A DNA stretch of 37,325 bases. It comes from Macrostomum lignano. Lineage: Eukaryota. The DNA lies in assembly GCA_002269645.1 (NCBI GenBank), contig NIVC01004709.1, positions 1 to 37,325 on the forward strand, read 5' to 3'. A program made the translations under genes and the position numbers. The notes under the pieces were generated by a model, which was not told the DNA's origin, did not search any database, and saw nothing but the letters and a program-made list of their open reading frames with translations. Position 1 is the first letter of the stretch. Each line of letters starts with the position of its first letter. Of the stretch, positions 1-30,353 are shown piece by piece.

Positions 1-146
<146 letters not shown>

Positions 147-286: not shown

Positions 287-415
287 AGGCCTGACAGATC
301 GAGTTGATGATTGGCAAATTATTATTTGTTCGAATTAAGCCATTGGTTTTATTAAGGATAGTAAAAAACAATCCTCCAGCAGCTTTAAAGTTCGAACGGC
401 AGCCTTCATCATCGC

Positions 416-483
416 TCAAGCGGAACCGTCTGTAGACCTGCCCCAGCGGAATTCGTTGCACTCCTTGGCTGCGCGACACGAGT
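416..483 (-). CDS. Vasopressin/oxytocin-type precursor, exon 3 (neurophysin C-terminus)
   Basis: Acceptor ttgcag|AC (phase 1). Reads D-SCRAAKECNEFRWGRSTDGSA*, matching the neurophysin end ESCxxxxxC. Confidence 0.85.
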
Positions 484-641
484 CTGCAATTGTTTAACCA
501 ACGTAGACTATTCAGAGGACTTCGGGCTGTGTATAAACTACTGAGCGAATGTGCAATGACAGTTTGCGAAATGGACTAAGACTAATCACGAACAAAACCA
601 AAGCCAGTGCACACGGCACTCAGCCCCGGTTATCAACGCAC

Positions 642-878
642 CAAGGTCGCAGCAGACGCCAGGAGCGCGGCAGCGGCGCCGCGCTCCAAAGTGCACCGCG
701 GCAGACTGCGCCGACAAGTCAGCCGGCCGAGAAAGGCCGCGCATCTCGTCGGCTCCCGCGCAGTCCTTCCTGGCCGCATTTCCCACGATGCAGCCGAAGT
801 TGCCGCAGCAGAGGCTGCGACCGAGGCAGACGCCTTTGCCGGATCCGCAGGATGGTTTGCAGGCGCTCAACTGCTTGC
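642..878 (-). CDS. Vasopressin/oxytocin-type precursor, exon 2 (neurophysin core)
   Basis: Acceptor acgacag|GC, donor CTTG|gtgcgt, phase 1-1, 237 bp. GKQLSACKPSCGSGKGVCLGRSLCCGNFGCIVGNAARKDC...RCRAPGVCCDL aligns with neurophysin [20 protein letters not shown]..GCFVG....RC...RCAA.GICC. Confidence 0.92.
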
Positions 879-1198
879 CTGTCGTGCGAGTGAAATTCGT
901 GCGTGTACAGTTGTTTGTCTACCAATGTGTGAACTCCACAGCATTAAAAAGTCGCCACCTTAGAGAGTGCGCAGTAGATTCTAGCTCAGTATTGACTTTT
1001 GAGTGACGAGGGATTGGGAAGAGCGGAGGACGAAGATTGGATGGATTGAAGCTTCCACCCGGTTTTCATTGTTTTTTCAAGCATTAATATCAGAATGGTT
1101 GGCCAGGTGATAGACGCAAAGGGGCAAAGGGTGGCGCGACTTTTTTTAATGTTGTTGAGTTTATTTGGGGGCCATGGTTCACCGTCCCATCCTCCCAC

Positions 1199-1287
1199 AT
1201 TCTGCCCATTCCGCTGACTCCTGAACGCGTCAATACTGTACGCAGGCACGCACTCATACACACGCTCACACAGAGTGTACAGCGGCC
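1199..1287 (-). repeat. Dispersed short repeat, copy 1 (SINE/MITE-like fragment)
   Basis: Reverse complement gctgtacactctgtgtgagcgtgtgtatgagtgcgtgcctgcgtacagtattg...caggagtcagcggaatgggcagaat matches 32144-32242 and 6051-6104. Confidence 0.75.
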
Positions 1288-1704
1288 GCGTCGGACCAGG
1301 TGTCATGGCGCAAAATCGGACGCGTCTAGCACTGAACTTCTCTGCCCGCGAAATTGTAAGCATTCGTCAGCGCCTATCTTTTGTCATCAAGTTTGATCAT
1401 TGCTCTGTAGTTACACGAGCTATCGGAAAAATTTTCACCTGCCACACGAGGTCACGACACTTTCAACTCTTGCGGAGAGAAAGAAACCCGATCAAATTAA
1501 TAGCTGCTAAGGCTTGAATGAGGCAACCGTGATTTCCACCTGATGTGGATTCAAGCAGACTGGGATTGAGGGCGAGAATGTCTAGGATATTCACTGGCTA
1601 ATTAATTTCATTTTCAATCTTCTGTATCACGGAGGGCGAGAAAGGCAAAGCACCAGAACTTCAACGCTTTTGTTTAGCTTGACAGTTTGTACAAATTAGC
1701 TCTT

Positions 1705-1998
1705 ACTAGTTCACTCACTAGTTTCACTCACTCACTAGTTTCACTCACTAGTTTCACTCACTAGTTTCATTTACTAGATTCACTCACTAGATTCACTCAC
1801 TAGATTCACTAGTTTCACTCACTAGTTTCACTCACTCACTAGTTTCACTCACTAGATTCACTCACTAGTTTCACTCACTCACTAGTTTCACTCACTCACT
1901 AGTTTCACTCACTAGTTTCACTCACTAGTTTCACTCACTCACTAGTTTCACTCACTCACTAGTTTCATTCACTAGTTTCACTCCCTAGTTTCACTCAC
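1705..1998. repeat. 13/17-bp minisatellite (actagtttcactc[actc]) at the 5' end of neuropeptide intron 1
   Basis: Direct tandem repeats abutting the splice donor. Confidence 0.95.
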
Positions 1999-2125
1999 CG
2001 GGAAAGCTTCGCTTCTTGCCACCAGGTGGGCAGTTGGCAACAAAGCAGAGCTCGCACAGGTGGCAAGCGGCCAGCAGCAGGGCGAGCAGCCTCACCCAGG
2101 ACTTGGCATTCAGCAGTGCAGCCAT
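1999..2125 (-). CDS. Vasopressin/oxytocin-type precursor, exon 1 (signal peptide + nonapeptide CFVANCPPG + GKKR)
   Basis: ATG at 2125. Translates MAALLNAKSWVRLLALLLAACHLCEL-CFVANCPPG-GKKR-SFP, then donor CCG|gtgagt in phase 1, compatible with exon 2. Nonapeptide at 2047-2021. Confidence 0.93.
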
Positions 2126-2301
2126 CAAGAGAACAAAGGTGGATCGAGTGACAAACAGTGACAATCGGATGGTTTCTGAAGAGGAGCTTCCCTAAAATTT
2201 GATAGATGAGCAGCAACTGACTCAATTTTCTGCCTCAGCAACAGGTTTGCAGTAGAAGGAACAGTGGGGTCTGCGCTCTCAGCCCGCGCCCGTTGCCGTC
2301 G

Positions 2302-2327
2302 TATTTATTCACGGCCGGTGGGCCAAT
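2302..2327 (-). promoter_or_regulatory. Possible core promoter of the neuropeptide gene (CCAAT box + TATA-like TAAATA)
   Basis: GGCCAATGA at 2321-2329 and minus-strand ATAAATA at 2308-2302, ~180 bp upstream of the ATG. Confidence 0.3.
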
Positions 2328-2415
2328 GAGATTCGTCTGAAATAGAAATTTTAATAACCCTCTTCTAAGCATTTAGTCTTAAAAATGACGATATTATGGC
2401 CTTCCGAAATCGTGA

Positions 2416-3226
2416 ATCAGTGACACTGCATTCTTATCAGTGACACTGAATCCTTATCAGTGACACCGCATTCTTATCAGTGACACTGAATCCTTATCAG
2501 TGACACCGCATCCTTATCAGTGACACCGCATCCTTATCAGTGACACCGCATCCTTATCAGTGACACTGCATCCTTATCAGTGACACCGCATCCTTATCAG
2601 TGACACCGCATCCTTATCAGTGACACTGCATCCTTATCAGTGACACCGCATCCTTATCAGTGACACCGCATCCTTATCAGTGACACTGCATCCTTATCAG
2701 TGACACTGCATCCTTATCAGTGACACTGCATCCTTATCAGTGACACTGAATCCTTATCAGTGACACCGCATCCTTATCAGTGACACTGCATCCTTATCAG
2801 TGACACTGAATCCTTATCAGTGACACCGCATCCTTATCAGTGACACCGCATCCTTATCAGTGACACTGCATCCTTATCAGTGACACTGAATCCTTATCAG
2901 TGACACCGCATCCTTATCAGTGACACTGCATCCTTATCAGTGACACTGCATCCTTATCAGTGACACCGCATCCTTATCAGTGACACTGCATCCTTATCAG
3001 TGACACTGAATCCTTATCAGTGACACCGCATCCTTATCAGTGACACTGCATCCTTATCAGTGACACTGCATCCTTATCAGGGGCATTTAATGATTATCAG
3101 TGACACTTCATCCTTATCAGTGACACTGCATCCTTATCAGTGACACTTCATCCTTATCAGTGACGCTGCATCCTTATCAGTGACACCGCATCCTTATCAG
3201 GGGCATTTAATCATTATCAGTGACAC
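2416..3226. repeat. 20-bp minisatellite (atcagtgacac[t/c]g[c/a]atcctt), ~40 units
   Basis: Direct tandem repeat with period 20. Confidence 0.97.
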
Positions 3227-3327
3227 CACACCCTATCTGTACCAAGCCCCCACATGAAATGGCAACTCTTGAAATGAATTTTTGCCCCTCAAATGAAATG
3301 CGCCACTGGCAGTAATCATGCAGCAGC

Positions 3328-3418
3328 GAGCTACGAAACTTGCCCGCCGGAACTTTGCCCGCCGAAGTTTGCCCGCCGACGTTTGCCCGCCGAAGTTTGC
3401 CCGCCTAAGTTTGCCCTG
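3328..3418. repeat. Short 16-bp tandem (tttgcccgccgaa[g/c]..), ~5 units
   Basis: Five to six recurrences of ttgcccgcc at ~16-bp spacing. Confidence 0.8.
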
Positions 3419-6050
3419 CTGCAGCAATTCAACAGTAACGTTGTTGAATTATTTGATAAACATTCGTCGAGTGCAGTTTTCAATTTCGAAGGAATTTGTC
3501 AGCAAGTTCACACATGCGCGGCCAACATTTTTGGAAATTCGGATTCGCCTAATTAGAGACCTGTCTTACGAGTACATTTGTACATTTGAAAGTATGGCGA
3601 GAAAGCTTATTTATATCATCAATTATCAATACTTTATCAATATGGTACGTTAGGCTGACCTATAAAACGACGGTTTGTTAATTATGGAGATCAATAGTGT
3701 CATATGTACATGTAATCAGTGCATCGATGCATGCAAGGATGGCCTCAGGACTTCCTTCTGACGTCTCAAAAGCTTGGGTGCGAACACGCCTGCATGACAA
3801 CTGAATCCAAGACGCCAGGCGTCCCGTACAGCAAACCAACGTTGGCGACGTCGGACGAATTTCACGACGTCTAATCGAAATCGCGGAAAAATATGTATTT
3901 TACATTACACCTACATCCAGCTGACGACGTCGGATTATTGTACGGGCGGTACAGGGAACTAGACGAAACACGCCCCTGTGTCGGTTGACTCGGCGCTGAT
4001 GATTTGGCCTGCCGGTTGAAGCCGCCGACGGCGCAAGAAGATTGCTTGGTCGGACGAAACCGACGATCTCGAAGGCGGCTTGCTGAGCTCACAGCAAAAT
4101 CACTTTAGAATTGTTAAAAGTGGGTTTTTACGACTCAAAGCCACATGTAACGACAACTTAAAGTAATGTGATAAGATAGTTGGCATGAGAGGCTTTCAGG
4201 ACAATTTTACTGCCTCCATAATCACATATTAATTCTATCTGTATTAACCCGCCATGAAATCAGCAAAGGGAAAATTATCCTGTTAAAAGATTTTTGAAAT
4301 AAGACGTCGACCCACTTTTTACCGAAAAATCGACCCCAAAGTAACCTCCGATACTTAAAGTGCCGGAAGTTTGCATAACACTGTTTATAATAAAAGCGGT
4401 AATACCGAATTTAGTGTAATCATTACTATATAATAAGAGTATTAAAAATACAGCAAAAAATTGAAGTAAAATAATAGGTAAAACTTAGAGTAGCATCTTT
4501 TTAAGTGATGTTTATTTAATTTCTAATTCGAAAAGTAAAAAAAGCGTGCTTTAGGCCAATCAGCTCACTCACTCGACCAAGACCTGATCAATTTAAGTAA
4601 ATGCCATCAGTGTCAATGTTACCTGGTAAAGGTGCAGGACTCAGGAGCTTGTGGTGTTCGTTTCTGTACGTCGTATTTACAAGATTTTTTACTTGTTTAT
4701 GCATTATTACTAGATATTTTCTTTTTGTTTGTATGCTTTTTGTGTAATATTTTCTGCACACACAAGTTTGCTTGCTAGTTTCGCATTCATACTTTGGTCT
4801 CAAAACATTAATATTATTAGTTTTCATTGATTCAATTACTTCAAACAATTTATGACTGAATGTCTCTTAGCATTTAATTTATTGTATTGACCATTTTTGT
4901 AACAAGTTAGAAACTAATGCTCTAAAGAGGGCAATATAATATTCTACATTCAATATATGCATAAATTAAATGCAAAAACCTCAATAGATTTTTTTCACAT
5001 TCTATAAATATAAGATTTAGTTTTCCTAGTATAAGCTTAATTTTAAAATAAGACATTGCTAATATCTGGGATAGATATTAGATAACTTATAAATTTTATT
5101 TTATGCTTTCAAATTTTAAATATCTGGAATTGTTTTATTTAAGACAGAACTTATAGCCTAATATTTAACTTTCATATTGCCTAGTATAAACAATACAGAA
5201 TTTTTTCTTTAAAATCATTAAAAAAATAGGTATAGCTATAGTTTGCTAACTTCTATTTACAAAGACAGATCACTTAATGTATCTATATCTAAGCTCCTTA
5301 TTAGCTTTTGCATTTAAAACTCTACCTTGGCATATATAAAATAGTTCTAAATTGACAAGAATTTGTAAAGGCATATTAATCTAAACCAGTTTAAAAAAAC
5401 AAAATAAAATGTTTTATTTAGCAAGATAGATTAGTTTTAAGATGGAGTAAGAAAGCAATTTTTAATAAATAAACTAAGTATTTTCGTAATTATTATACTT
5501 TGGAATCTTTTATCCATAGTGCCTATAAGCTTTATATCAAATTAGTTTCCTTTCTATTATGCTGCTTAACATTCTTATCCTGTATAATATTTTATCCCCT
5601 TAGGCAATGCCACACCATGTCATATCACCATCCTGCGTAAGTTCATTTTCATTTTCTAGAGATGTTATTATTCAGAAATTCCAGGGTTCAAGAAGGACAA
5701 ATTGAGCAAACAAACATAGCAGTAGAGGGGATAAGAAATTTACTTGCTCCCCTGGATTTCTGCTTGCTCAGTCTGGAGTTTCAACAATTGGCTTTATTTT
5801 GGCAAGATTTTTGTGTTTTTATCTTTCTGTTTTTTTTTATTTTGTCTCACTGGCCCGCTCAATATCTGTAAAGAGAGGCTTAGTGAAGCACAGTAACTCA
5901 ATGCAACTGACTCTTGCGCCACAACCCCTACTTTGATTGCGTGTGTGGCCACATTCATCTGGGGCTTGTGCACCAAAAATTGACCATGACAAATGTGCTG
6001 CTATTCACATCCATGAGAGCCGATTCCTGTACATTTGCCTGAAGATTCAT

Positions 6051-8951: not shown

Positions 8952-10060
8952 ATGGCTGCTCAGCAGCATGCGGCTTCCGCGGAGCCAATGCAGCCGCAGC
9001 CGCCAGCTGAGATGGTCGACCTAGCAACCAGCTTGAGCGACCGTGAGTTGGTTAGGCGGATGTCAATCAAATGGCGCGACGCCGGCCGGCTAAAGGTGCG
9101 TGAGAAGCGGACTGGGCCAACCGCGCCCAACTCGGCAGTTTGCAGCCCAACGCCGGGGCAGAGGTTGCCTAGGCAACAACAGGCACTGGCGCAGCACCAA
9201 GAACATCAGTCCACATCGCACAGACGGCGTTCGTTGATGCGCCAGCTGTCTGACATCGCTGACGGTGGCAATGGCAGCAGCGGCGGTGGCACTGGTGAAA
9301 GTGGAGTCGTCTTCGAACTCGGGCGGCGTGGGCCTCCGGCGCGGCACAGGCGCCAAATGTCGGTACCATCGACTGCTCAGGCGGCTGCTGCGGCTGCCGC
9401 AATGCAGCTTCTGCCGCCGCAACAGCCGACGATGCCGAGGCCAGTGGAAGATTGACATCCGTCGGTGACGACTCCGTTGAAGGCATTAAGGACAGCGCGG
9501 CGCCGGGACCGGAGTCACAGACACAGACGGAGGTGGCTGAGCCATCAACAGCGTCGGCTACCAAGGACGACAACGCCAACGACAACAAGGACATCTTTGA
9601 AAACGACGACTCTTCTTCGGTTGTGTCATCATCCAGGTCGCAGGCACCGGTGACGACCGGCGCCGATGGGTCCCAGGGCTCGCCATCGGCTCGGCACTTG
9701 CACACGCCGTCCTGTCTGAACCGGCCTGGCTCGTTCAGCTCACCATTGACCCCGTAGACATTGATCGGCTTAGCCAGTACTCGCTATACATGGTGCACGA
9801 TGCTAGGTTCTACTTTCAGCATCCCTACCTGCGCATGATCTGCACTTTACTAGTCGTTTTTCTTAACTTCCTAATCTACGCCGAGGATCCCATAGCCGAC
9901 TCGTCGCAGGTGTGCAGCATCCCCGTGTTAGGCAACGTGTTCGCATTCGTTTTCAGCCGGTATCCGCCCAACGCATGGAGCCTGCTCAAAGTGATCATGT
10001 GGCTGCTGGGAATCCTGGTTGGCATCATCGCTGGAAAACTGTGTCACGTATTTGTGTTCA
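8952..10060 (+). CDS. TMEM117: TMEM117 homolog, first coding exon (long low-complexity N-terminus with two apparent -1 frameshifts at ~9452 and ~9751; conserved part from ~9751)
   Basis: DARFYFQHPYLRMICTLLVVFLNFLIYAEDP...LLKVIMWLLGILVGIIAGK matches TMEM117 FRYYFQHPWSRMIVAYLVIFFNFLIFAEDP. Donor TTCA|gtgaga, phase 1. The start at 8952 is inferred by bridging the frameshifts; alternative start ATG 9790. Confidence 0.8.
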
Positions 10061-10201
10061 GTGAGACTGTCTTAAGTCAAACTCTTTGCTTATTTGTTTA
10101 AATTGTTTAGGTGAAGTGGCAGAATCATCGGCAAATTCGCTGGGTGGCTAAAAATATCCAAGATGTATTAAACAAGAATTGTACAAACCTACAACTTTCA
10201 G

Positions 10202-10908
10202 ACCGTTGGTTTCGGCTGAAAATGTTTGCTAACGACGAAGGCTCCTGGATGACAATGTGGTTCTCAACCATCATATCCGTGTACATTTTCTCCAACATTT
10301 ACAACGCTTTCCTGCTGACCCTCGGCGGCACGTCCAACATCCCCTATCTCATCAGTATGCAGATGGGCATCAAGAACTCCACGTTCATGAAGATGGCAGC
10401 CACAGGCACCTGGCTTGGCGACTTCATGACCGCCTGGATGGTGAGCGACATGATGCTACAGGAGCGTCTTTATCCAAGCTGGAACCGCTTCATCCGGCAG
10501 TGGTGGCGCTCTGGCTACACTCGGATCGTCATGTTCTGGCTGCTGCTAATCAGCTTGTGCACCACCGTTATCACAGTGATCTGCACCGACATCATCCGCT
10601 GGGACTACCTCAACAGGGGCTTTGCTCCGTCAAACGAACTGTCGCGGGCTTTCTTAGCTGCATCAATTCTGAGCCTTGACCTGCTGATTGTCATGCAGGA
10701 TTGGGACTTTCCTAACTTCACTAACAGCCTTGACGTTCGGCTGCCCGGCGTAGCCAAAGCTATCTACGCGTTCGATATCCGCATACCGGACTGGTTTAAA
10801 CGGATTGTCGACGACGACGTTTGGACGGTGCACATCACCGGGAAATGGTTCAACTATGGAGTACTGTTCGTAGTTATGTGTCTGGATTTGAACATGTGGA
10901 AGAATCAG
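10202..10908 (+). CDS. TMEM117: TMEM117 homolog, exon 2
   Basis: Acceptor tttcag|AC, donor CAG|gttagt. Contains RLKMF..D.GSWMTM, MKMAATGTWLGDFMTAWMVSDMMLQ, LNRGF.PS.ELSRAFLAS, DLLIVMQDWDFP and HITGKWFNYG..DLNMWKNQ, all TMEM117 signatures. Confidence 0.95.
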
Positions 10909-10992
10909 GTTAGTCAGGTTTTGGGGTTTAGAAGAAGAATTAGATTAAGGGGTTGGAAATGCGTAGCCGAAATCTCCACTTTCTACATGCAC

Positions 10993-13900
10993 AAGCTTGA
11001 CAAGCCCTATACTTCACAAACACCAAGCTTGACAAGCCCTAAACTTCACAAACACCAAGCTTGACAAGCCCTATACTTCACAAACACCAAGCTTGACAAG
11101 CCCTAAACTTCACAAACACCAAGCTTGACAAGCCCTATACTTCACAAACACCAAGCTTGACAAGCCCTATACTTCACAAACACCAAGCTTGACAAGCCCT
11201 AAACTTCACAAACACCAAGCTTGACAAGCCCTAAACTTCACAAACACCAAGCTTGACAAGCCCTAAACTTCACAAACACCAAGCTTGACAAGCCCTATAC
11301 TTCACAAACACCAAGCTTGACAAGCCCTAAACTTCACAAACACCAAGCTTGACAAGCCCTAAACTTCACAAACACCAAGCTTGACAAGCCCTATACTTCA
11401 CAAACACCAAGCTTGACAAGCCCTATACTTCACAAACACCAAGCTTGACAAGCCCTAAACTTCACAAACACCAAGCTTGACAAGCCCTATACTTCACAAA
11501 CACCAAGCTTGACAAGCCCTAAACTTCACAAACACCAAGCTTGACAAGCCCTAAACTTCACAAACACCAAGCTTGACAAGCCCTATACTTCACAAACACC
11601 AAGCTTGACAAGCCCTAAACTTCACAAACACCAAGCTTGACAAGCCCTATACTTCACAAACACCAAGCTTGACAAGCCCTAAACTTCACAAACACCAAGC
11701 TTGACAAGCCCTAAACTTCACAAACACCAAGCTTGACAAGCCCTAAACTTCACAAACACCAAGCTTGACAAGCCCTAAACTTCACAAACACCAAGCTTGA
11801 CAAGCCCTAAACTTCACAAACACCAAGCTTGACAAGCCCTAAACTTCACAAACACCAAGCTTGACAAGCCCTAAACTTCACAAACACCAAGCTTGACAAG
11901 CCCTAAACTTCACAAACACCAAGCTTGACAAGCCCTAAACTTCACAAACACCAAGCTTGACAAGCCCTAAACTTCACAAACACCAAGCTTGACAAGCCCT
12001 ATACTTCACAAACACCAAGCTTGACAAGCCCTAAACTTCACAAACACCAAGCTTGACAAGCCCTAAACTTCACAAACACCAAGCTTGACAAGCCCTATAC
12101 TTCACAAACACCAAGCTTGACAAGCCCTATACTTCACAAACACCAAGCTTGACAAGCCCTAAACTTCACAAACACCAAGCTTGACAAGCCCTATACTTCA
12201 CAAACACCAAGCTTGACAAGCCCTATACTTCACAAACACCAAGCTTGACAAGCCCTAAACTTCACAAAAACCAAGCTTGACAAGCCCTATACTTCACAAA
12301 CACCAAGCTTGACAAGCCCTAAACTTCACAAACACCAAGCTTGACAAGCCCTAAACTTCACAAACACCAAGCTTGACAAGCCCTATACTTCACAAACACC
12401 AAGCTTGACAAGCCCTAAACTTCACAAACACCAAGCTTGACAAGCCCTAAACTTCACAAACACCAAGCTTGACAAGCCCTAAACTTCACAAACACCAAGC
12501 TTGACAAGCCCTAAACTTCACAAACACCAAGCTTGACAAGCCCTAAACTTCACAAACACCAAGCTTGACAAGCCCTAAACTTCACAAACACCAAGCTTGA
12601 CAAGCCCTAAACTTCACAAACACCAAGCTTGACAAGCCCTAAACTTCACAAACACCAAGCTTGACAAGCCCTATACTTCACAAACACCAAGCTTGACAAG
12701 CCCTAAACTTCACAAACACCAAGCTTGACAAGCCCTAAACTTCACAAACACCAAGCTTGACAAGCCCTATACTTCACAAACACCAAGCTTGACAAGCCCT
12801 AAACTTCACAAACACCAAGCTTGACAAGCCCTAAACTTCACAAACACCAAGCTTGACAAGCCCTATACTTCACAAACACCAAGCTTGACAAGCCCTATAC
12901 TTCACAAACACCAAGCTTGACAAGCCCTAAACTTCACAAACACCAAGCTTGACAAGCCCTATACTTCACAAACACCAAGCTTGACAAGCCCTATACTTCA
13001 CAAACACCAAGCTTGACAAGCCCTAAACTTCACAAAACCAAGCTTGACAAGCCCTATACTTCACAAACACCAAGCTTGACAAGCCCTAAACTTCACAAAC
13101 ACCAAGCTTGACAAGCCCTAAACTTCACAAACACCAAGCTTGACAAGCCCTATACTTCACAAACACCAAGCTTGACAAGCCCTAAACTTCACAAACACCA
13201 AGCTTGACAAGCCCTAAACTTCACAAACACCAAGCTTGACAAGCCCTAAACTTCACAAACACCAAGCTTGACAAGCCCTAAACTTCACAAACACCAAGCT
13301 TGACAAGCCCTAAACTTCACAAACACCAAGCTTGACAAGCCCTAAACTTCACAAACACCAAGCTTGACAAGCCCTAAACTTCACAAACACCAAGCTTGAC
13401 AAGCCCTAAACTTCACAAACACCAAGCTTGACAAGCCCTAAACTTCACAAACACCAAGCTTGACAAGCCCTAAACTTCACAAACACCAAGCTTGACAAGC
13501 CCTATACTTCACAAACACCAAGCTTGACAAGCCCTAAACTTCACAAACACCAAGCTTGACAAGCCCTAAACTTCACAAACACCAAGCTTGACAAGCCCTA
13601 TACTTCACAAACACCAAGCTTGACAAGCCCTATACTTCACAAACACCAAGCTTGACAAGCCCTAAACTTCACAAACACCAAGCTTGACAAGCCCTATACT
13701 TCACAAACACCAAGCTTGACAAGCCCTATACTTCACAAACACCAAGCTTGACAAGCCCTAAACTTCACAAAACCAAGCTTGACAAGCCCTATACTTCACA
13801 AACACCAAGCTTGACAAGCCCTAAACTTCACAAACACCAAGCTTGACAAGCCCTAAACTTCACAAACACCAAGCTTGACAAGCCCTATACTTCACAAACA

Positions 13901-14236
13901 CCAAGCTTGACAAGCCCTATACTTCACAAACACCAAGCTTGACAAGCCCTAAACTTCACAAAACCAAGCTTGACAAGCCCTAAACTTCACAAACACCAAG
14001 CTTGACAAGCCCTAAACTTCACAAACACCAAGCTTGACAAGCCCTAAACTTCACAAACACCAAGCTTGACAAGCCCTATACTTCACAAACACCAAGCTTG
14101 ACAAGCCCTATACTTCACAAACACCAAGCTTGACAAGCCCTAAACTTCACAAAACCAAGCTTGACAAGCCCTATACTTCACAAACACCAAGCTTGACAAG
14201 CCCTAAACTTCACAAACACCAAGCTTGACAAGCCCC
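10993..14236. repeat. 32-bp satellite (caagcttgacaagcccta[a/t]acttcacaaacac), ~100 units, filling the TMEM117 last intron
   Basis: Period 32, one HindIII site per unit, two A/T variants. Confidence 0.99.
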
Positions 14237-14325
14237 AAAGCTTTTGCCAGCAAGCTATTTTTAATTTTTGCAAGCATGCTCTTCTTTACTCTGCTAATCA
14301 TACCAATACTCAACCCGTTTATCAG

Positions 14326-15027
14326 ATGATCTACTCGCCCTGCGAATACGGCCAATACGTCGGACCTTACGGCTCCATCTACACCGTGCACAACGAGACC
14401 GAACTCGCACTAGTAGATTGCAGCAGCGACAATCACACGCTTAACTATGAGTACAGAAATCAAACTTTTGCGCCAGACGGCGAGACCCTTCTGTCTAAGG
14501 ACATCTGGACCCATTCGCGCTACACCGGCTACCCGCTGTACGTGAAGCTCAGCTCGTTCCTGCTCAGCCTTACCGCTTTCGCCGTATTCGGAGCTTTAGT
14601 TGTGATATTCGGCCGCTATAGTGAAGAGCACAGAGACGTCTACCAGGGCCGGATGAAGAAAAATCGCACACTGAACAATCTGCTGGTTAGACACAGCGTG
14701 CACAGTCTCGACAACATTGTCGAAGTTGAGGGCGAAGCCAACGCAGCAGCAGCAGCAGATGCGGTCGCAGCTTTTAAGCCGTCAACGCCGCTGAAGTCAA
14801 CTGTGTCAGACCCCGGCGTGCAGCGATTGAAGCGGCTCAAGAAGATGAAACTGTCAGATCGGCAACATCAGCGTCAGGAGCATCGCCAGAAGCTGATGAA
14901 ACGGGCAGCTCAATACTGCTCTTGCTGCGTCTGCTCGTCTCGTTGCTGCTGCTGCGAGTCGAGGCCCACCGATGGGGCGGCATCGGGCCAAGGCCCAGCT
15001 GCTGGCGGCCAGACAATGGACGTGTGA
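14326..15027 (+). CDS. TMEM117: TMEM117 homolog, last exon
   Basis: Acceptor tttatcag|ATG in phase 0. KNQ|MIYSPCEYGQYVGP..IYTV matches TMEM117 KNQIFYKPHEYGQYIGP..IYTV. Followed by the last TM helix, a Cys-rich tail and stop TGA. Confidence 0.92.
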   Translation: MIYSPCEYGQYVGPYGSIYTVHNETELALVDCSSDNHTLNYEYRNQTFAPDGETLLSKDIWTHSRYTGYPLYVKLSSFLLSLTAFAVFGALVVIFGRYSEEHRDVYQGRMKKNRTLNNLLVRHSVHSLDNIVEVEGEANAAAAADAVAAFKPSTPLKSTVSDPGVQRLKRLKKMKLSDRQHQRQEHRQKLMKRAAQYCSCCVCSSRCCCCESRPTDGAASGQGPAAGGQTMDV

Positions 15028-17469
15028 TCCATCAATTCTGCTAGATATTTTTCTTCAAAATGTTCAAACTACTCAATCACTGGCCTATACAGGAAGTTGT
15101 CAATGTCTCCATTGAACGATCCGGGTGAGGGATAGCCGCGCTTCCAGAGCAGGGGGTTTTGGGTGGTATGACCGTTGCTATCGTTATTGTTGTTATGATT
15201 GTTTGAATTTTTGTGTCAGTTGCCTTCTAATAAATTCAACTAAGATCTCAAAGAGACTATACTTCTTAATTCTGTCGTCATAATCGCCTCGTCTTTTTCT
15301 CGCCATTTATCATTTTCTCTCTTTCACAGTGCAGCTTAAGATAAATACTCATTTAATCTGTCTTGCCTTAGTTCGATCGGTGTATCAAGTTTTTTAGTAT
15401 TGATACTCCGTATTAGTACGTATTAGTTTACGGACAAAGCACTAGGCTATATTCTATTCTAGACAGAATATCTTGTTGTCTACGTCTTCCTATATTATAA
15501 AGTTTTGGTAAAAAATTGTTCTTATAAAATTACATAGCTTTCACTATTTTCACCCTGTATGTATTTGCTACTTTCAGTAGGCAAGTCAAGTGTGTAGTAT
15601 TTTGGCGCAATTCAATATTACCTCGTCATTTACTGTATTATTTTGTTTTATTATGCAAGCAGACTGGTCCATTGTATGAGAAGTTTCTGTTTTCAGTTTT
15701 AATCAAAAGCTGAACTAGTATTGACTTCTAAAAACGATTTTGTGCGATCTCGCACTGTTGTAATTACAATTTTATTATCTTACTTTTACCTGCTTCGTCG
15801 CGAATTAACTCAAGAAAACTCTTCGCTGTCAAGTAGTGCATTGTGCTTTTGTCTTTGATAAATTCAAATCAATTATGCTTATTGCTTGCTCATTAAAGTA
15901 AAATATGCCATGTCCTCGTATCATTTACTTCACTGTTTTTGGGGCACTCAATACTTTAAGTTTTTTCAGGATTGTCTTGCTCGTTATTTGCTTTTTTACA
16001 AAGTATTTAATTGCTACCGTGGCTTGAACAGTCAAAAGACCATGCTTATACTACTGCTTGCTAAGTAGTCGTGACTTTGGATAGCTTATTGCACCTTAGG
16101 AAAATCAGTGACTCAAATTTTACTCATGGTTAACACAGTTGTTTTAATTACCATTGTGGTCTTTCGACTGTATTACTTCTTAGTTTTACATGTACTTTTT
16201 CCTTTATTTAAGATTTAAATTTTGTTAAAGAAACCCGCCGATCAGCAACTCATTCCGTTGTTGTGACGCCATAGTGTCTTAACTATATAAATGTATCATT
16301 CTTAAACAGTAAATGGAGAACTTAGCAAAGACCTACTGCAGGTCTTAAATGGATGAACAACACTGCTGGTTGCATGCTTGTCAGTTGGTTGGCGAGTTCG
16401 TTAACTATATAAACATTAGTACCATACTTCATGTACAAGAAGTGCATGTACTATTGACGCTGATTGTTTTAATACTCGTATTTACTCGTATTTCGCGCTA
16501 ATTGCAGCAACTTTTTTGTTGTTTTTCTCTGGTAAATCCAGACTCAAAAATACGCACCGTAATCGCTATGTATGACGTCCGCTATCTTATCAGTGCAAAA
16601 CAGCTCGCTGTTTACAACGCTAACAATCAGTACAGCTCGGTTTAAAAAGCTGAAAAATTGTCTCAATAAAAATATAAAGTGCATTGTTGTCGAACGTTTT
16701 TTATAACCAGTCTGTGTCAAGCAAAATAAACTCGAAAAAATCTTTAGTCTGAATTGTTTTTTGTTTCCTTAGTGAATAATCCCCTTTTTACTTTCTGGCT
16801 TGCATTGGAACAATTGGAACAATTGGAACAATAATTGGAACAATTTTATAACGCTGTCATTCGATCCGTTAAATATTACATGGTACGATGCGTATGTGTT
16901 GAAGGTATTACAAATTCATTTACTCATTGCCGCGCGTCTCGTAAAGTCGTAATCTAGCCTTATACGAGCGTACGCTTGTAAAACTGTGTGAAGGGAAAAA
17001 GAGATCCGTGCGTTCGTTCAGTGTGTACGAGTCGCGACGAGTGTACATTTGATCCAATGTACACTAGAAATTTAAATTAGAACCAATGTACATTGATTTG
17101 CGGAGAGAAAGGGGCGGCCGGTTTGCTTATCTGAAAACGGGTCGCAGGTCCTAGTAGAAGTGGCGGGGCTGGCACTGGAGCGGGAGGAGGGCTTGTGTTC
17201 GAGGCCTTGAAGCCTGACGCTAAAATTTGTGTGCAGAAATACAGACACACCAACCAGAGCTGGTGCAGGGAGTTGGGGACGAGAAGACCAAGCTCTGTGC
17301 GCACCGCGCACAAGCTTAATAATTAGAATACAGAGCGGACCTCCTCACGCCACCACCTCAAATCTCGGCCCCCCTTGTATGTTTTTATCTTTTCGCTTTC
17401 TCTAATTATTTTTTACCCGGCTAAAAAGCACAGTTATTTGCTAATTTGATTGAAAAAACTGTTGCAGTA

Positions 17470-17826
17470 ATGTCCAACAGAGAATTTAAAATTGTCCTCT
17501 TGGGCGAGGGCTGTGTCGGCAAAACTTCTTTGGCGCTGCGCTACGTCGAGGATAAGTTCAATGACAAACACTTAACCACAGTGCAGGCCTCGTTCCTTTC
17601 TAAGAAACTTAACGTCTCCGGCCGACGGGTGACGCTGAACATCTGGGACACGGCCGGGCAGGAGCGCTTTCACGCCCTCGGTCCAATCTACTATCGGGAT
17701 AGTGACGGCGCTATTCTAGTTTACGACATCACTGACGAGGATTCGTTCGAGAAGGCGCGCAACTGGGTCAAGGAGCTGCGCAAGATTCGCGGCAACGATG
17801 TCACACTGTACCTAGTTGGCAATAAG
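17470..17826 (+). CDS. RAB21: Rab21 small GTPase, exon 1
   Basis: FKIVLLGEGCVGKTSL.LRY.E.KFNDKH.TT.QASFL.KKLN, IWDTAGQERFHALGPIYYRDS.GAILVYDITDEDSF are Rab21-diagnostic. Donor AATAAG|gtgcga. Confidence 0.95.
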
Positions 17827-17940
17827 GTGCGAACACTGCGGGGAGGGCATATTATCCCCACGATAGATAATTTGTACCGGTCTTTGTTTGGTAGCAGTTT
17901 GCAGTTCGTATTGCTATTTGGTAAAACTGTCTCCCTACAG

Positions 17941-18261
17941 ATTGACCTCGAACGCGATCGTCATGTACCGCTAGCGAATGCCGAGGAATTCGCCAGCTCG
18001 GTCGGCGCCAAGCACTGCGGCACATCCGCTAAGCTGAACCGCGGCGTAGAAGAGGCGTTCGCTCGCCTGACAGCCGACATGCTGGCTCGTCGCGACGCCG
18101 AGGAGGCGTCCAACCCAGGCTCCTCGTCTAGGTCGTCCACGTCAAGGTCTGAGGGCGCAACGTCAGCTGGTCGACGTTCCTCTGGCCGAAACGCCGGCAT
18201 CATTGTTGGCGAGGATGACGTAGACGGAGCTTCAGGCGCCGGCGGTGGCAAATGCTGCTAG
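17941..18261 (+). CDS. RAB21: Rab21 small GTPase, exon 2
   Basis: Acceptor ccctacag|ATT restores GNK|IDLE (G4). TSAK (G5) and C-terminal CC prenylation motif present. Confidence 0.93.
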   Translation: MDLERDRHVPLANAEEFASSVGAKHCGTSAKLNRGVEEAFARLTADMLARRDAEEASNPGSSSRSSTSRSEGATSAGRRSSGRNAGIIVGEDDVDGASGAGGGKCC

Positions 18262-26023: not shown

Positions 26024-27654
26024 TCATCGATTTCCCGAGGGCGCCGCGGTCTCGGCCGCCGCCTCCGCCTCCTCCTGCAGCTCCTGCAGCCGGCGCTTCT
26101 CCTCCTTCTCCCTGATCTTGCGGTTTCTCTCCTCGGCCTCGGGTGTGATCAGATTGTGCCAGCGGGCCACCGCCCGGTTCGGCGTCTGCAGCAGCTCGCG
26201 CCAGTGCAGCAGCGGCAGACTGTCAGGGTCGGCGCCTGCGTGCAGCTCCAGAGAGCCGACGGGCCGCTTGAGCCGCAGGGTCTCGGTCTTGTGCACCAGA
26301 GTGATGCGCAGGATGCACGTCTCCAGCATGTCGCGAGCGCCAACTTCGAACACGAACTGCTGGTTGAAGTAGGGATTCCTGGTGCCCGAGACCTGCTTGG
26401 ATCGTTTCACCTGTTCGCGTTTCAGCTGCGGATGCCGCAGGCTCAGGCGCACAAAGGTGTTTGGTAGGGTCTCGAGGTCCGGCTCCTCGGAGCGACCCTT
26501 GGCGACGAAGACGCCCTTGCATTCGATGATGCTCACGGTGAGCGACATGTTCTTGGCGGCGTAGTACAGCGACAGGCAGATGTCGCCTGGCCCGCGTTCG
26601 TCGCGTGGCAAGCCGCGGCGCAGCGCCTTCGAGAAGTCGGCTGTCCGCCCGAGAATCTCGTCCAGACCTTCGCCCAGGCGACGTAGGTGGACAACTTTGC
26701 GTGCCACCATGTCGTGCTTGATTCCGTAGTCCCAATCGAATACCTCGAACACGACAATCTTCTCCTTGAGCTCTGACTTCTTCTTTACTGGGAAGACGCA
26801 GGAGAAGTTGAATACCGGGTTCCCGCTGTTGCGCACAGTTTTCGACGTTTTTGGCTTTGTGCCGCGCGTCTTGCCAGCAGCCTCGTCCTTCTCGCTCATC
26901 ATGCTCACCACCACGTACGGGTCTAAGCTGTCCAGGCCTTTTGGCAGATCCTGACAGTTGGACACGGTCACTATGAGGTTGTCCTTCTTTAGATCGTACT
27001 CCAGCGAGTAGTTGATCATGCCGAACTGGGGCCGGTTTGCGCCGGTCAGGTCCAGGTCTTGTACAGCACTGACTGGGCGGGCGGCTGCATCCGGCTTCGG
27101 CTGGACTTGCTGCGGCAACAGCAGCAGTAGATGAGCAGCGCTAGCAGCAGCAGAAAAATGAGACCGATACCGGAAAATATTAAAATAATGGCCCACAGAG
27201 GCAATATTTTGCGCAGCTTCTGCCACAGAGTAGCGAAAAAGTTTTTCTGCTTCTTTTTCTTCTTTTTCTTCTTGTGCTTCTTGTCCTCTTTAGAGACAGC
27301 TTTGCCCAGCTTTGAGGCTCCGCTGACAACGTCAGAAAGATGCGCACCCTTCTTCTCGATCTGGCTGACCGCTTTACGACGCTGTAGCTCCTTGTGCAGC
27401 ACGGTTTTTAGCTGCCGTAGCAGCTCCTTGTGGTCGCCACCCTCGGGAGGCGGTGCCAACTCTTCTTTTGATCGTCTCTCTAGGCCAATCTCGCTGTCTT
27501 CGTCGTCCAGGTCTGGAACCTCTTCCAGCTGAATGGAGTCGGCACCGGCGGCGGGGATGGCGGTGGCCACAGCGGCTACTGGCGGCGGCGACGGCAGCAG
27601 CAGCGGCAGCAGAAGCAACAGCAGCGGAAGCAGCGGCCCTGCCCGCCGCCGCAT
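26024..27654 (-). CDS. Intronless synaptotagmin-like protein (signal-like N-terminus, luminal domain, TM, CCCC, C2A, C2B) with an apparent -1 frameshift at ~27076
   Basis: C2A: FGMINYSLEYD..L.VTV..C.DLP....DPYV...NPVFN..FEVFDWD...HD. C2B: GDICLSLYY....LTVSIIEC...NPYFNQQFVF...ARWH.L. The TM plus Cys cluster lies in the upstream frame; one extra C in gcccagtc joins the two frames. Confidence 0.85.
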
Positions 27655-30353
27655 CCTTTGTCCGCGTCGGGCCGCCTTTCCCGAGGCTTCGCCGACTGCA
27701 GCGATGGCTAAAAATGGATGTCCGATGGCGTACGCTGATAACTCCCGAGCCAATGCAGTTTTTTAGAAGTGATCTCAGCTGGAAAATTTACTGAGCCTCA
27801 GCGCTGCTGGCTCTGCTTATCCACTGCTTTGAGTTCCAGTCCGCTCTTGTCTTGCGTGTTCAAAAGCCCCAGCCTAGCCAGCGTCTCCCCCCTCTGCGCT
27901 CGCTCGGCATTGTAAAATTTTTGTTTGCGCGCGCATTCTGCAGCGGCTGCAGCCTAGCACAGCACGTGTTCTGCAGTCTCACGTGTGGCAGCTGGGCCCC
28001 TACCCCTAGCCCGCTTGCCTGTCATCCAAGCACGTTTTCTATTCAACAAGCTGCCTGTCCTCTGTTGCTATTCGAAGCGGTTGGTGAAGAAGACGCCTAA
28101 GAATTGAAATCGCATTGTAGGCTCATGCGCCCCCTGCACAGCCAACCGAGATTCGTATTGTTCTGCCCCTGATCTGGCGAGCCTCTCATTTCTCTTCTCC
28201 TGTGTGCAGCCATCGGTTTTGGCTAAACTGTCTTATCTTCTTTCTATTTCTCATCTCTCTGTTACATGCATTTGCACCAACCAACTTGGGTCATGCTATG
28301 CTAAGCATTCTCAATATTACACTGCTGCGCATGCTATTATAATTTACTAACATCTCTACTTTCAGTAGTTATATACTAATAAAGAACTAGCTTAGATCCT
28401 TATGATGGCGTGATAGGTAACATGCAAGATTAAAGAAACAAGTTTTTCTTTCTTAAGTCCCTGGTGAGTCAGCTGCTTCACGCCGACGTTCAATCGTTTG
28501 CTCACAGCAAGATGACTGCTCTTTTGAAATTGGCTCTGCCCGTGCGAGAGCTTCTCCTGGGACCAACTCCCCAATGCTAGGAAGGAAAATCAATTGCTTG
28601 TGAAAGATAAAAGCTCCGCTCTAAACTCTAAGTAATTTTTTGGCGTATAAGAGACAGAATCACTGCTGTAAATGAGTTTCACACCCTGCTGAGACGCATA
28701 AATATATTTATCGTATTGCTGATTGAGATGATGAAACTTTTCCACGTACGTCTGGGTATGTTTTTGTTCTGCAGAAAATAGAAGCCACCTGCTAATCAAA
28801 GGGAAATCGGTGCAAAAAACAATTAAAGTCGCCTACAGCTCAACGTTGCATCAAATAGATAGGGGAATCCGTTCCCCAGGGCCCGGAAGGCATAAAGTCT
28901 ACAGCTGTAAGCAAAAACACGCTGTTATCGAGATGCTCAGTCGTCCGAATCAGCCAGCGGAACGACTAGACAGCCGGCCTCCTCAATGGATTCGTTTGTG
29001 TAGCTGAGGTCTGCAGCTTCATCTGTCTGCAGCTGCTTCTGACGCTTCTGTTCGATGAAGAAGAGCTGCGGGTTTCAGTTTTGTGCAAAAATTTTGGTTT
29101 ATTAGCAGACCTTGAGCACGCACTCACACAGACTCACACGGCCTGTGAGGCCGTACATCCGCACCGCATCCAATGCATTTGAATGCTGACAATTTAGGCT
29201 AGGGCTGGTAGGGTTAGTGCTTCGGTTACGGTCCGCAGTCGGGGTCAGAGGAGCTCTGCGGTAAAGGCGTCTGACTCTCAGGCCGCGACCACATTAAAGT
29301 TGTCATGCAGGCTGCCAGACCGTGTTAGCAGACCGTGTTGTCTGCCAAGGTTGATTGGCCCGTCAAAGCGAGACGCCTTGATGCTGCATCGACGACTTCA
29401 TCGGTGCCCAGTCGGCTCAACAGTCTTTACCGGAGGTGCTGCTGCTGACGCTGCAGGCACTCAACTGCCTACTGGTTTAAAAGTACAGGCGCGCCCAGAA
29501 CTTTAGGCGCTCCTTTGTTTTGATTTTTATGCCGGCTTCAAGTTAGACTCATCAAAGATTGAGATGACGGAGAAGCTGGCCCCATAAGAGCGCAGAAACT
29601 CCTAAACAGGGTCATTTAGTATTGCCATTTCAGAACAGATTGCTGGAGATGTCTAAATATATGACCATGCGATTCGTAGACCTCACCCAGCTACGAGCCA
29701 TCTCGAATTTCCTGAAAAAATCTTTTATCAATTTTTTAAACGATATTTTGATTGCGACTGCTCACCCCACCCCCTGCTGGAGGCTGAGGATCAGGTTTTT
29801 AACAAAGCATACTTCAAGATCAGATTTCGACTCGATAATATTATAATAAAAAATGGCAAGGAAGCCTCACAGATGTTGACGAATAATTTAACTCAACCTT
29901 CTCAAACCTAACAGACCTGAGTATTTATTAATAGGACTCCAATCAGGATACTCTGGCTTCGAATCAGTGTTCGTGTTTAGCGTTCAGTTGCCTGATTAAA
30001 AGACATCCTGCGCCCGCTGTTTGCCTTTCTCCGCCTTCTCTTTAAGCTCGTGTCTCTAAATTCCCAGGCAATATCCTTTATCCCGTGCCACAGGTAGCTA
30101 CGCGGTTATCATCACATTCCGTGTCCAGATATTTATTCCAGCCAGGACGACTTGAGTAGGAGAAATGGGAAACTTCGTTTCTTGGAAAACGAATTGCATC
30201 AATTGCAATGCCATTCAGTTTGCGGCAGGCAAGTGTCGTAGACCATTGACACAGCATCAGCATGATTATGTAATCAAGCCCTGCATCATTTATTAAAATA
30301 GTTTCTAAGGGAAAATATTAAATATTAAAAGGATTTCTACAAGTGCAGATCAA

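Follow-up and report, generated by a model that had tools for sequence, protein, structure and literature searches.

A platytocin-type vasopressin/oxytocin precursor gene of Macrostomum lignano, with a 12-cysteine neurophysin of probable assembly origin in copy g4

The vertebrate genes of the vasopressin/oxytocin (VP/OT) family, AVP and OXT, consist of three exons. Their intron 1 is in phase 0, and their intron 2 is in phase 1 and lies between the CC-x-x and x-C of the neurophysin, as in human AVP, where the exon boundary falls in the codon between these two motifs. A search of the literature for a citable source on the AVP/OXT exon boundaries of vertebrates gave no result. Among protostomes, precursors of the conopressin, inotocin and annetocin types combine the same overall architecture with a neurophysin of 14 cysteines. 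In the flatworms, the platytocin precursor of the polyclad Stylochoplana pusilla (BCO16375.1; PMC8896804) is built of a signal peptide, a nonapeptide, a GKKR processing site and a 14-cysteine neurophysin, and Kobayashi et al. 2022 (PMC8896804) demonstrated a receptor for platytocin, together with antidiuretic and egg-laying effects. Here we compare with these systems a gene of Macrostomum lignano, a transgenesis-capable model flatworm.

The window analysed is the whole of contig NIVC01004709.1 (37,325 bp) of the M. lignano assembly Mlig_3_7. The gene model put forward in a preliminary description of this DNA, three minus-strand exons spliced in phase 1 into a 143-aa precursor of flatworm origin, proved exact. 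Exons of 127, 237 and 68 nt (Table 1) join to 432 nt with a single, terminal stop codon, both introns have GT/AG borders and phase-1 junctions, and the GenBank CDS is identical; such agreement lies far outside what chance would give. The precursor reads MAALLNAKSWVRLLALLLAACHLCEL-CFVANCPPG-GKKR-SFPGKQLSAC...STDGSA, and its assignment to the VP/OT family is upheld by hormone, processing site and neurophysin domain. The predicted nonapeptide CFVANCPPG, unchanged from the preliminary description, lies near the N-terminus, has the C-x4-C-P-x-G pattern and lines up with the hormones of the 60 relatives; the amide-donor Gly and basic cleavage site take the form GKKR here, and GKR, GKKR, GRR or GRKR among the relatives. 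The Pfam neurophysin profile Hormone_5 (PF00184) matches residues 48–130 over profile positions 2–79 of 79 (E=1.7e-13), with a score of 51.7 bits where the gathering cut-off is 27.2, and bovine neurophysin II (PDB 1npo) aligns over residues 45–132 (E=5.6e-7). An hmmscan search at E<=10 gave no match to Hormone_4 (PF00220) in the window protein; because this model spans the nonapeptide only, and HMMER filters discard weak short matches, its absence is uninformative.

Table 1 Features of the M. lignano VP/OT-type precursor gene in the window
Feature	Position	Strand	Description	Comparison
Exon 1	1999..2125	-	Start codon, signal peptide, nonapeptide, G-KKR and first 3 1/3 neurophysin codons; phase-1 end, GTGAGT donor	Borders are those of the GenBank gene
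Presumed signal peptide	2048..2125	-	Codons 1-26, MAALLNAKSWVRLLALLLAACHLCEL; hydrophobic core L13-A20; -1 residue Leu, atypical; putative cleavage site	
Predicted hormone	2021..2047	-	CFVANCPPG, residues 27-35; Cys1-Cys6 disulfide and C-terminal amide expected once processed	Same in 4/4 Mlig003431 copies
Amide donor and cleavage site	2009..2020	-	Gly amide donor and tribasic KKR, G36-K37-K38-R39	GKKR also in S. pusilla platytocin precursor
Intron 1	879..1998	-	1120 nt, GTGAGT...CGACAG	
Tandem array	1705-1998	-	13-nt units, (GTGAGTGAAACTA)n; 5' 294 nt of intron 1	
Exon 2	642..878	-	Most of neurophysin; G+C 68%; phase-1 junction on either side	
Out-of-frame stretch of exon 2	676..738	-	Residues 90-110 (21 codons)	Relative to three other genomic copies
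Intron 2	484..641	-	158 nt, GTGCGT...TTGCAG; phase 1, within Asp122 codon of CC-D-L-D-S-C	
Exon 3	416..483	-	Final two neurophysin cysteines, short tail, TGA stop (416-418)	
Candidate polyadenylation hexamer	348..353	-	AATAAA, 62 nt past the stop codon; from sequence alone	

This gene is a VP/OT-type hormone precursor of M. lignano that is already deposited and cited, and it is not new. The window protein is 100% identical to GenBank PAA46766.1 (BOX15_Mlig003431g4), whose gene on this contig spans exactly 416–2125. The preliminary description had taken a different view, regarding the gene as a hidden one that automated annotation could miss, and as an unrecognised, lineage-specific VP/OT-type hormone gene. 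Several observations fit that view: the GenBank product name is 'hypothetical protein', full-text literature searches for 'CFVANCPPG' and 'Mlig003431' gave no occurrence, our search found no functional study of an M. lignano VP/OT-type peptide, and Ala at position 4 occurs in none of the other relatives retrieved, being peculiar to the Mlig003431 gene among the 60. However, the exact CDS has been deposited, and the pipeline behind the deposited M. lignano models is RNA-seq-guided (PMC5730564); sister copies are named 'Oxytocin' in UniProt; and PAA46766.1 is one of four accessions listed as M. lignano VP/vasotocin precursors by Kobayashi et al. 2022 (PMC8896804). Because of this listing and the UniProt and GenBank records, an overlooked gene is refuted as to novelty and is, in our judgement, extremely improbable; with PAA46766.1 already named as a precursor, the claim of novelty falls on the preliminary description's own terms. 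The discovery value is small: the model was in GenBank before, and the literature had listed its accession among flatworm VP/OT precursors. We rejected Thiel et al. 2018 as prior art for the peptide, because its preprint version uses M. lignano only as an achatin reference (PAA66935.1). In Thiel et al. 2018 the species is named in the legend of a figure that contains a vasotocin panel.

A word-indexed protein search, with the window protein and an intact copy as queries, returned M. lignano clusters only; platytocin and the other relatives came to light with an exhaustive phmmer search. The resulting comparison covers 60 relatives. A 1035-aa repeat protein (P0005) with a low-complexity match to 'CRRSLP' was set aside. 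The platytocin precursor is among the best non-Macrostomum matches, aligning with the intact M. lignano copy at 40% identity (phmmer E=4e-11). Cys1, Phe2, Asn5, Cys6, Pro7, Pro8 and Gly9 are common to both hormones, as is the unusual tribasic GKKR. The mature peptides are nevertheless not identical, with seven of nine residues the same: Val3 and Ala4 replace the Ile3 and basic Arg4 of platytocin, CFIRNCPPG-NH2, and the residue at -1 is Leu in M. lignano and Ser in the polyclad. Judged by sequence, the window gene qualifies as an orthologous flatworm precursor of platytocin type (Pro8, GKKR, neurophysin), and the comparison settles CFVANCPPG-NH2 as the peptide predicted for M. lignano, set apart from the platytocin of the polyclad by positions 3 and 4. 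Of the two residues singled out as peculiar in the preliminary description, Ala4 has kept that standing and Pro8 has lost it. The platytocin precursor reads CFIRNCPPG-GKKR, so that Pro8 and GKKR are shared with it, and Pro is the commonest residue at position 8 (20 of 61 rows, four of them Mlig003431 copies).

In the protostome conopressin/inotocin/annetocin-type precursors, too, Pro8 is common and Val3 occurs, as in Gigantopelta CFIRNCPPG, Hypsibius CFVTNCPPG and annetocin-type CFVRNCPTG. Position 4, however, is Arg, Thr, Gln, Ser, Asn, Ile or Phe and never Ala, and these precursors have a dibasic GKR and a small residue at -1 where the M. lignano gene has GKKR and Leu. The resemblance to vertebrate AVP/OXT lies in the neurophysin, over the stretch aligned with the bovine protein; the window gene is without copeptin, and its peptide differs at positions 2–4 and 8. 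Its intron 1, in phase 1, lies about 5–6 codons further 5' than the phase-0 intron 1 of vertebrates. The place of intron 2, which the preliminary description had equated with that of the vertebrate genes, stands: the intron is in phase 1 between CC-x-x and x-C in the window gene, and it is in phase 1 too in the homologous Glu codon of a second M. lignano VP/OT-type gene, Mlig001406g1. This second gene (PAA87831.1) occupies another locus, on the 784-kb contig NIVC01000215.1, and is likewise divided into three exons by two phase-1 introns, which lie at positions homologous to those of the window gene. Pro8, the 'EL' ahead of Cys1 and a 14-cysteine neurophysin are common to it and Mlig003431, but the two are only 48% identical, and the peptide of the second gene is CFINNCPPG (amidated, [M+H]+ 961.40) with GKR. 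PMC8896804 cites PAA87831.1 in the same sentence as PAA46766.1.

The neurophysin recognised in the preliminary description is present as a domain, but a defect in it had been missed: the window copy has 12 cysteines against 14 in the family, and the missing pair aligns with bovine Cys54 and Cys61. Relative to three other genomic copies in the same assembly (L001, L002 and L003), the window has one extra base at 738 and lacks one base at 676. This +1/-1 pair of single-base indels throws 21 codons out of frame and thereby accounts for the 12 cysteines; two adjacent substitutions at 668–669 alter residue 113. Within the out-of-frame stretch the adjacent frame still spells the authentic segment AFLGRLTCRRSLPRCTLERG, and the 14-cysteine protein returns once both exon-2 indels are undone. 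At both indels and both substitutions L001, L002 and L003 are unanimous against the window, and all three encode 14 cysteines, aligned with those of the platytocin, conopressin, annetocin and vasopressin precursors. The deposited copies g1, g2 and g3 of Mlig003431 (PAA50340.1, PAA85176.1 and PAA63765.1) agree with the window copy in hormone, processing site and intron positions, and the DNA of exons 1 and 3 is 99–100% identical, but they keep the frame over residues 90–110 and with it all 14 neurophysin cysteines; TMEM117 adjoins the gene in L001 and L002. As the other three copies are intact and undoing the indels restores 14, the missing cysteines most likely reflect a sequence error and not a property of the gene. 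The Mlig001406 paralogue was rejected as a source of the private exon-2 variants, whether by gene conversion or by mis-polishing, its sequence there being too different. Restoration of the frame by an indel pair is an outcome that a real compensated mutation would give as well.

The most likely cause of the 12-cysteine neurophysin, as far as the alignments can tell, is an assembly artefact. The window would be a short redundant contig, 99.8% identical to contig NIVC01003664.1, which holds one of the intact copies. Most of its differences are private single-base indels such as a long-read consensus leaves, two of them in exon 2. The alignment of the window with L002 extends over 12,127 bp with 6 mismatches and 15 gaps. 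We polarised the differences by local alignments, exact-context matching having proved too strict. Eleven of the 12 one-base indels relative to L002 are private to the window, and five window deletions coincide exactly with SNPs between L001 and L002, a pattern that we read as the signature of a consensus from mixed reads. Two further private deletions break up a 405-codon exon of TMEM117, which is thereby spread over three frames, and the annotated TMEM117 product shrinks from 839/840 aa to 559 aa. The end of the contig lies within a (GTCT)n microsatellite, which L002 spans. A published analysis of DV1, the sequenced line, recognises three subgenomes and explains most 4-copy blocks of Mlig_3_7 by erroneous representation of paralogs (PMC10733133).

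Alternatively, the 12-cysteine neurophysin could be real and the window a true fourth haplotype or paralogue of the neopolyploid genome. A -1 frameshift would then have made good a +1 frameshift at a distance of 62 bp; CFVANCPPG would still be delivered, with a carrier domain that is defective or degenerating. It fits this possibility that the indel pair restores the frame and clusters with the two private substitutions. With errors spread uniformly, the 237-bp exon should contain about 0.2 indels, so four private changes within 71 bp lie closer together than expected, and, unlike the intergenic deletions, the indels at 676 and 738 are not at known differences between the other copies. At some of its differences from L002 (8139, 8780, 8968, 9257 and 9747) the window agrees with L001, so it is not simply L002 plus errors and has a haplotype character partly its own. 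Given the redundant subgenomes of DV1 (PMC10733133), one copy could plausibly be under relaxed selection. The cost to the domain is also slight by profile score, which falls merely from 54.8 to 51.7 bits. By the disulfide map of bovine neurophysin, however, a protein without the cysteines aligned with Cys54 and Cys61 would contain two cysteines whose partners are missing. In 12 kb of the same contig, moreover, the 11 private one-base indels outnumber the substitutions (about 6), the adjoining TMEM117 exon is frame-shifted by two private indels as well, the five deletions at inter-copy SNP sites follow the pattern of a consensus artefact, and published read-depth analysis finds most 4-copy blocks to be mis-represented 3-copy loci (PMC10733133). 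On balance we consider a real allele unlikely, and we are fairly confident that the gene is copy g4 of Mlig003431, a platytocin-type precursor whose 12-cysteine neurophysin is most likely not biological. PAA46766.1 (g4), which probably carries a neurophysin frame-shifted by assembly errors, is unsuited as a reference; the intact sequence is PAA50340.1.

The proposed mechanism for the window precursor is modelled on the VP/OT family. The signal peptide would direct the 143-aa precursor into the ER, where a Cys27-Cys32 bond would close the six-residue ring and neurophysin would bind the N-terminus of the hormone and carry it into dense-core vesicles. Cleavage after KKR by a prohormone convertase, trimming of the basic residues by a carboxypeptidase and conversion of Gly36 into the C-terminal amide would then yield CFVANCPPG-NH2 (903.37 Da; [M+H]+ 904.38), a neutral 'oxytocin-like' peptide expected to act through a G-protein-coupled receptor. 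What the sequence analysis itself establishes is the gene structure, the motifs, the homology of the neurophysin and the identity to PAA46766.1; all these processing steps, and expression of copy g4 itself, are inferred. For a transcript and for the cyclised, amidated product, the RNA-seq-guided origin of the GenBank model is indirect evidence.

One step of this scheme deserves closer scrutiny. A basic n-region and a hydrophobic core are present upstream of the hormone, but all five M. lignano sequences have Leu at -1, where every other relative has A, S, G, T or C. This feature, which the preliminary description had passed over, makes the N-terminus of the mature peptide less certain. Signal peptidase might cut upstream, for example before Glu25-Leu26, to give an extended ELCFVANCPPG-NH2 (1145.50 Da; [M+H]+ 1146.51) or a product that is trimmed further. 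Such a cut is favoured by paralogue P0006, whose site SLA/EL satisfies the -3/-1 small-residue rule far better than AEL/CF does, by conservation of 'EL-CF' between two genes just 48% identical, and by additional cysteines at positions 21 and 24, just upstream. However, the alternative site in the window gene has His at -3, neurophysin binds its hormone at the free amino group of Cys1, and to our knowledge the hormone directly follows the signal peptide in all characterised members of the VP/OT family. We therefore regard the extended peptide as unlikely, and retain CFVANCPPG-NH2 as the predicted product.

More broadly, the M. lignano VP/OT-type peptides might be atypical in both maturation and signalling. 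A Glu-Leu extension or non-canonical cleavage is suggested by the conservation of Leu at -1 in both paralogous genes; a non-orthologous receptor, or loss of the receptor, is suggested by the change of Arg4 to Ala, by the same Leu and by the lack of a reported canonical receptor in the genome; Kobayashi et al. found no clear orthologue of VP/OT receptors in M. lignano (PMC8896804). We think this combined departure from the family quite improbable, and flag the true N-terminus of the peptide and the missing receptor as the points of interest. A minor feature of the gene concerns the 5' part of intron 1: because the 13-nt tandem array fills it from the exon border onwards (Table 1), the first unit of the array is the donor that the intron uses.

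Splicing of the three minus-strand exons of Mlig003431g4, with the minus strand of window 300-2400 read, gave a 432-nt open reading frame whose sole stop codon is terminal, and the exon lengths place both junctions in phase 1, so that the coordinates and arithmetic of the preliminary description were exact. The 143-aa product reads MAALLNAKSWVRLLALLLAACHLCEL / CFVANCPPG / GKKR / SFPGKQLSAC...CNEFRWGRSTDGSA, and an AATAAA hexamer lies 62 nt past the stop codon. The position of intron 2 appears to be as in vertebrates, consistent with the exon boundaries of human AVP. Pfam Hormone_5 (neurophysin) matched residues 48-130 over a near-complete profile (E=1.7e-13, 51.7 bits, gathering cut-off 27.2 bits), and bovine neurophysin II (PDB 1npo) matched the protein with E=5.6e-7. 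When the intact sister copy was used as query, an exhaustive phmmer search returned 61 proteins at E<=1e-3; excepting one low-complexity repeat protein, all are vasopressin/oxytocin (VP/OT)-type precursors with the hormone immediately N-terminal to a GKR-type site. The three-exon gene is therefore more than chance. It encodes a flatworm VP/OT-type precursor, as had been proposed, and the guessed flatworm source is Macrostomum lignano.

Coordinates of the Mlig003431g4 exons and introns, the second VP/OT-type gene and other features of the window
Feature	Position	Strand	Details
Exon 1	2125-1999	-	127 nt
Exon 2	878-642	-	237 nt
Exon 3	483-416	-	68 nt
Intron 1	between exons 1 and 2	-	1120 nt, GTGAGT...CGACAG
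Intron 2	between exons 2 and 3	-	158 nt, GTGCGT...TTGCAG
TMEM117	8952-15027	+	Pfam PF15113, 329.6 and 63.5 bits
Small GTPase ORF	17446-18261	+	Ras/Rab-type domain, Pfam Ras 175 bits
Thr-rich repeat ORF, 628 aa	19206-21092	-	signal-peptide-like start
C2-domain ORF, 400 aa, with overlapping upstream ORF	26024-27753	-	two C2 domains in the 400-aa ORF, Pfam C2 97.5 bits
Mlig001406g1 (PAA87831.1)	L005 (NIVC01000215.1) 3001-5406		second M. lignano VP/OT-type gene

Intron 1 opens at its 5' end with a 13-nt tandem array, (GTGAGTGAAACTA) x ~21 (window 1705-1998, minus strand); the first unit supplies the splice donor, so that every unit carries a GTGAGT donor-like site. Copies differ in the length of intron 1, which measures 1120 nt in the window, 1121 nt in L002 (NIVC01003664.1), 1174 nt in L003 (NIVC01000342.1) and about 1476 nt in L001 (NIVC01001815.1). 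Another array, of about 40 copies of a 20-nt unit (window 2416-3226), lies some 290 bp upstream of the start codon of the hormone gene and is found, at differing lengths, at all sister loci. In an older ML2-based model of a sister copy (UniRef A0A1I8HIC0, 150 aa), 'PGGKKRSF' is absent, and with it the end of the hormone and the signals for amidation and cleavage; this omission fits the use of an upstream GT within exon 1 as donor and is probably a mis-model.

The gene had been described as hidden and liable to be missed by annotation, but the deposited gene on NIVC01004709.1, the contig of assembly GCA_002269645.1 (Mlig_3_7) that makes up the entire window, spans exactly 416-2125 and its product, PAA46766.1 ('hypothetical protein BOX15_Mlig003431g4 [Macrostomum lignano]'), is 100% identical to the window protein. 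Two sister entries are already named 'Oxytocin' in UniProt. The deposited annotation derives from RNA-seq-guided transcript assemblies (StringTie, TACO, TBONE; PMC5730564), an indirect indication that at least one of the near-identical copies yields spliced transcripts with both junctions. Using bidirectional BLAST of public databases, Kobayashi et al. (Sci Adv 2022, PMC8896804) found other flatworm VP/vasotocin precursor genes only in M. lignano, namely PAA85176.1, PAA50340.1, PAA46766.1 and PAA87831.1. Since PAA46766.1 is among them, the suggested novelty falls while the identity stands. Neither the string CFVANCPPG nor functional work on that peptide was found in searchable literature text.

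The precursor of the polyclad Stylochoplana pusilla (BCO16375.1, 'oxytocin/vasopressin-like peptide') reads ...NVVIS/CFIRNCPPG/GKKR/..., and this peptide, platytocin, is identical to CFVANCPPG at 7 of 9 residues, with Pro8 and the tribasic GKKR common to both. Residues were counted over 61 parsed precursor rows, the four Mlig003431 copies included. Pro8, listed among the features that made the peptide unrecognised, proved ordinary: it is the commonest residue 8 (20/61 rows) and occurs in Gigantopelta CFIRNCPPG, Hypsibius CFVTNCPPG and many CFITNCPPG sequences. Ala4 is unusual, as had been suspected, being confined to the Mlig003431 copies; elsewhere residue 4 is T, Q, R, S, N, I or F. Mlig003431g4 was already known, and Ala4 is its sole peptide-level peculiarity. 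The second M. lignano gene, Mlig001406g1, is 48% identical and encodes CFINNCPPG-GKR and a 14-Cys neurophysin. Like Mlig003431, it has three exons, 'EL' preceding Cys1 and phase-1 introns at homologous positions, one of them in the codon that separates CC-V-G from I-C.

The preliminary description overlooked a frameshift in the neurophysin. After the hormone the window protein has 12 cysteines; 14 are present in 45/61 rows, including all other M. lignano copies. Alignment of exon 2 showed that L001, L002 and L003 unanimously have one base fewer at window 738, one more at window 676, and differ from the window by two adjacent substitutions at 668-669. The indels put residues 90-110 out of frame, giving GLSRPADLSAQSAAVHFGARR in place of AFLGRLTCRRSLPRCTLERGG, with loss of the cysteines aligned with bovine Cys54 and Cys61; the authentic AFLGRLTCRRSLPRCTLERGG is still legible in the neighbouring frame. 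Removing the base at 738 and adding one at 676 restored a 14-Cys protein equal to PAA50340.1 except for S113R.

We compared the window with L002 (12,127 bp aligned, 99.79% identity, 6 mismatches, 15 gaps), and used L001 and L003 as outgroups to polarise the one-base indels. Eleven of 12 such indels were private to the window. Nine of the 11 are deletions, mostly within short homopolymers, and five private deletions (7918, 8184, 8249, 9403, 9742) lie exactly at L001/L002 SNP sites, the pattern expected from a consensus of mixed reads. Those at 9403 and 9742 split into three frames a 405-codon open exon of neighbouring TMEM117, whose first coding exon is a single 405-codon frame in L002; the annotated product has 559 aa in the window versus 839/840 aa on sister contigs. 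The contig starts inside a perfect (GTCT)36 microsatellite (window 1-145), a typical assembly break-point, and L002 (11985-12300+) continues through a longer (GTCT)n array. Mlig_3_7 is a Pilon-polished Canu assembly of PacBio reads, of which 180 Mb falls in duplicated blocks sharing at least 95% identity (PMC5730564). A later study found three subgenomes in the sequenced line, DV1, and regarded most four-copy blocks of Mlig_3_7 as erroneously represented paralogues (PMC10733133); the assembly contains four copies of the Mlig003431 locus. Taken together, these observations make it likely that the 12-Cys neurophysin is an assembly artefact. Because all four private exon 2 changes fall in a 71-bp stretch, the second indel compensates for the first and neither is at a known inter-copy difference, we retain a small probability that it is real, arising from a compensated frameshift in one redundant copy. 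Of the new results the most useful is a warning about deposited copy g4, PAA46766.1, which probably contains a pair of frameshifts of sequencing origin.

From the gene and its motifs we infer each processing step by homology with the rest of the VP/OT family. The precursor would enter the ER, the Cys1-Cys6 ring would close, and neurophysin would bind and package the hormone; cleavage at KKR, trimming of the basic residues and conversion of Gly36 to a C-terminal amide would yield CFVANCPPG-NH2 (903.37 Da). Two observations point to an N-terminally extended mature product, which nonetheless appears unlikely. All five M. lignano sequences have Leu immediately before Cys1, a place taken by A/S/G/T/C in the other relatives without exception, and in paralogue Mlig001406g1 the -3/-1 rule favours SLA|EL over AEL|CF. 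A clear orthologue of the VP/OT receptor was not found in M. lignano by Kobayashi et al. (PMC8896804).

Elsewhere in the window, about 101 copies of a 32-nt unit (98% matches, 10992-14239) occupy most of a TMEM117 intron, beyond which the profile match resumes at 14326. The Ras domain match is broken by about 38 extra residues, probably a short unspliced intron read through in frame. The Thr-rich ORF has no Pfam match; in it a 21-nt repeat, present about 49 times and encoding TTTEAPTTTTKAP units, is followed by a His-Gly run and by RGGWQKR repeats, and the product looks like a secreted mucin-like protein. The C2-domain ORF is overlapped by an upstream ORF (27046-27753) containing stretches that are hydrophobic, Cys-rich or Lys-rich, and the two together look like a synaptotagmin-like gene.
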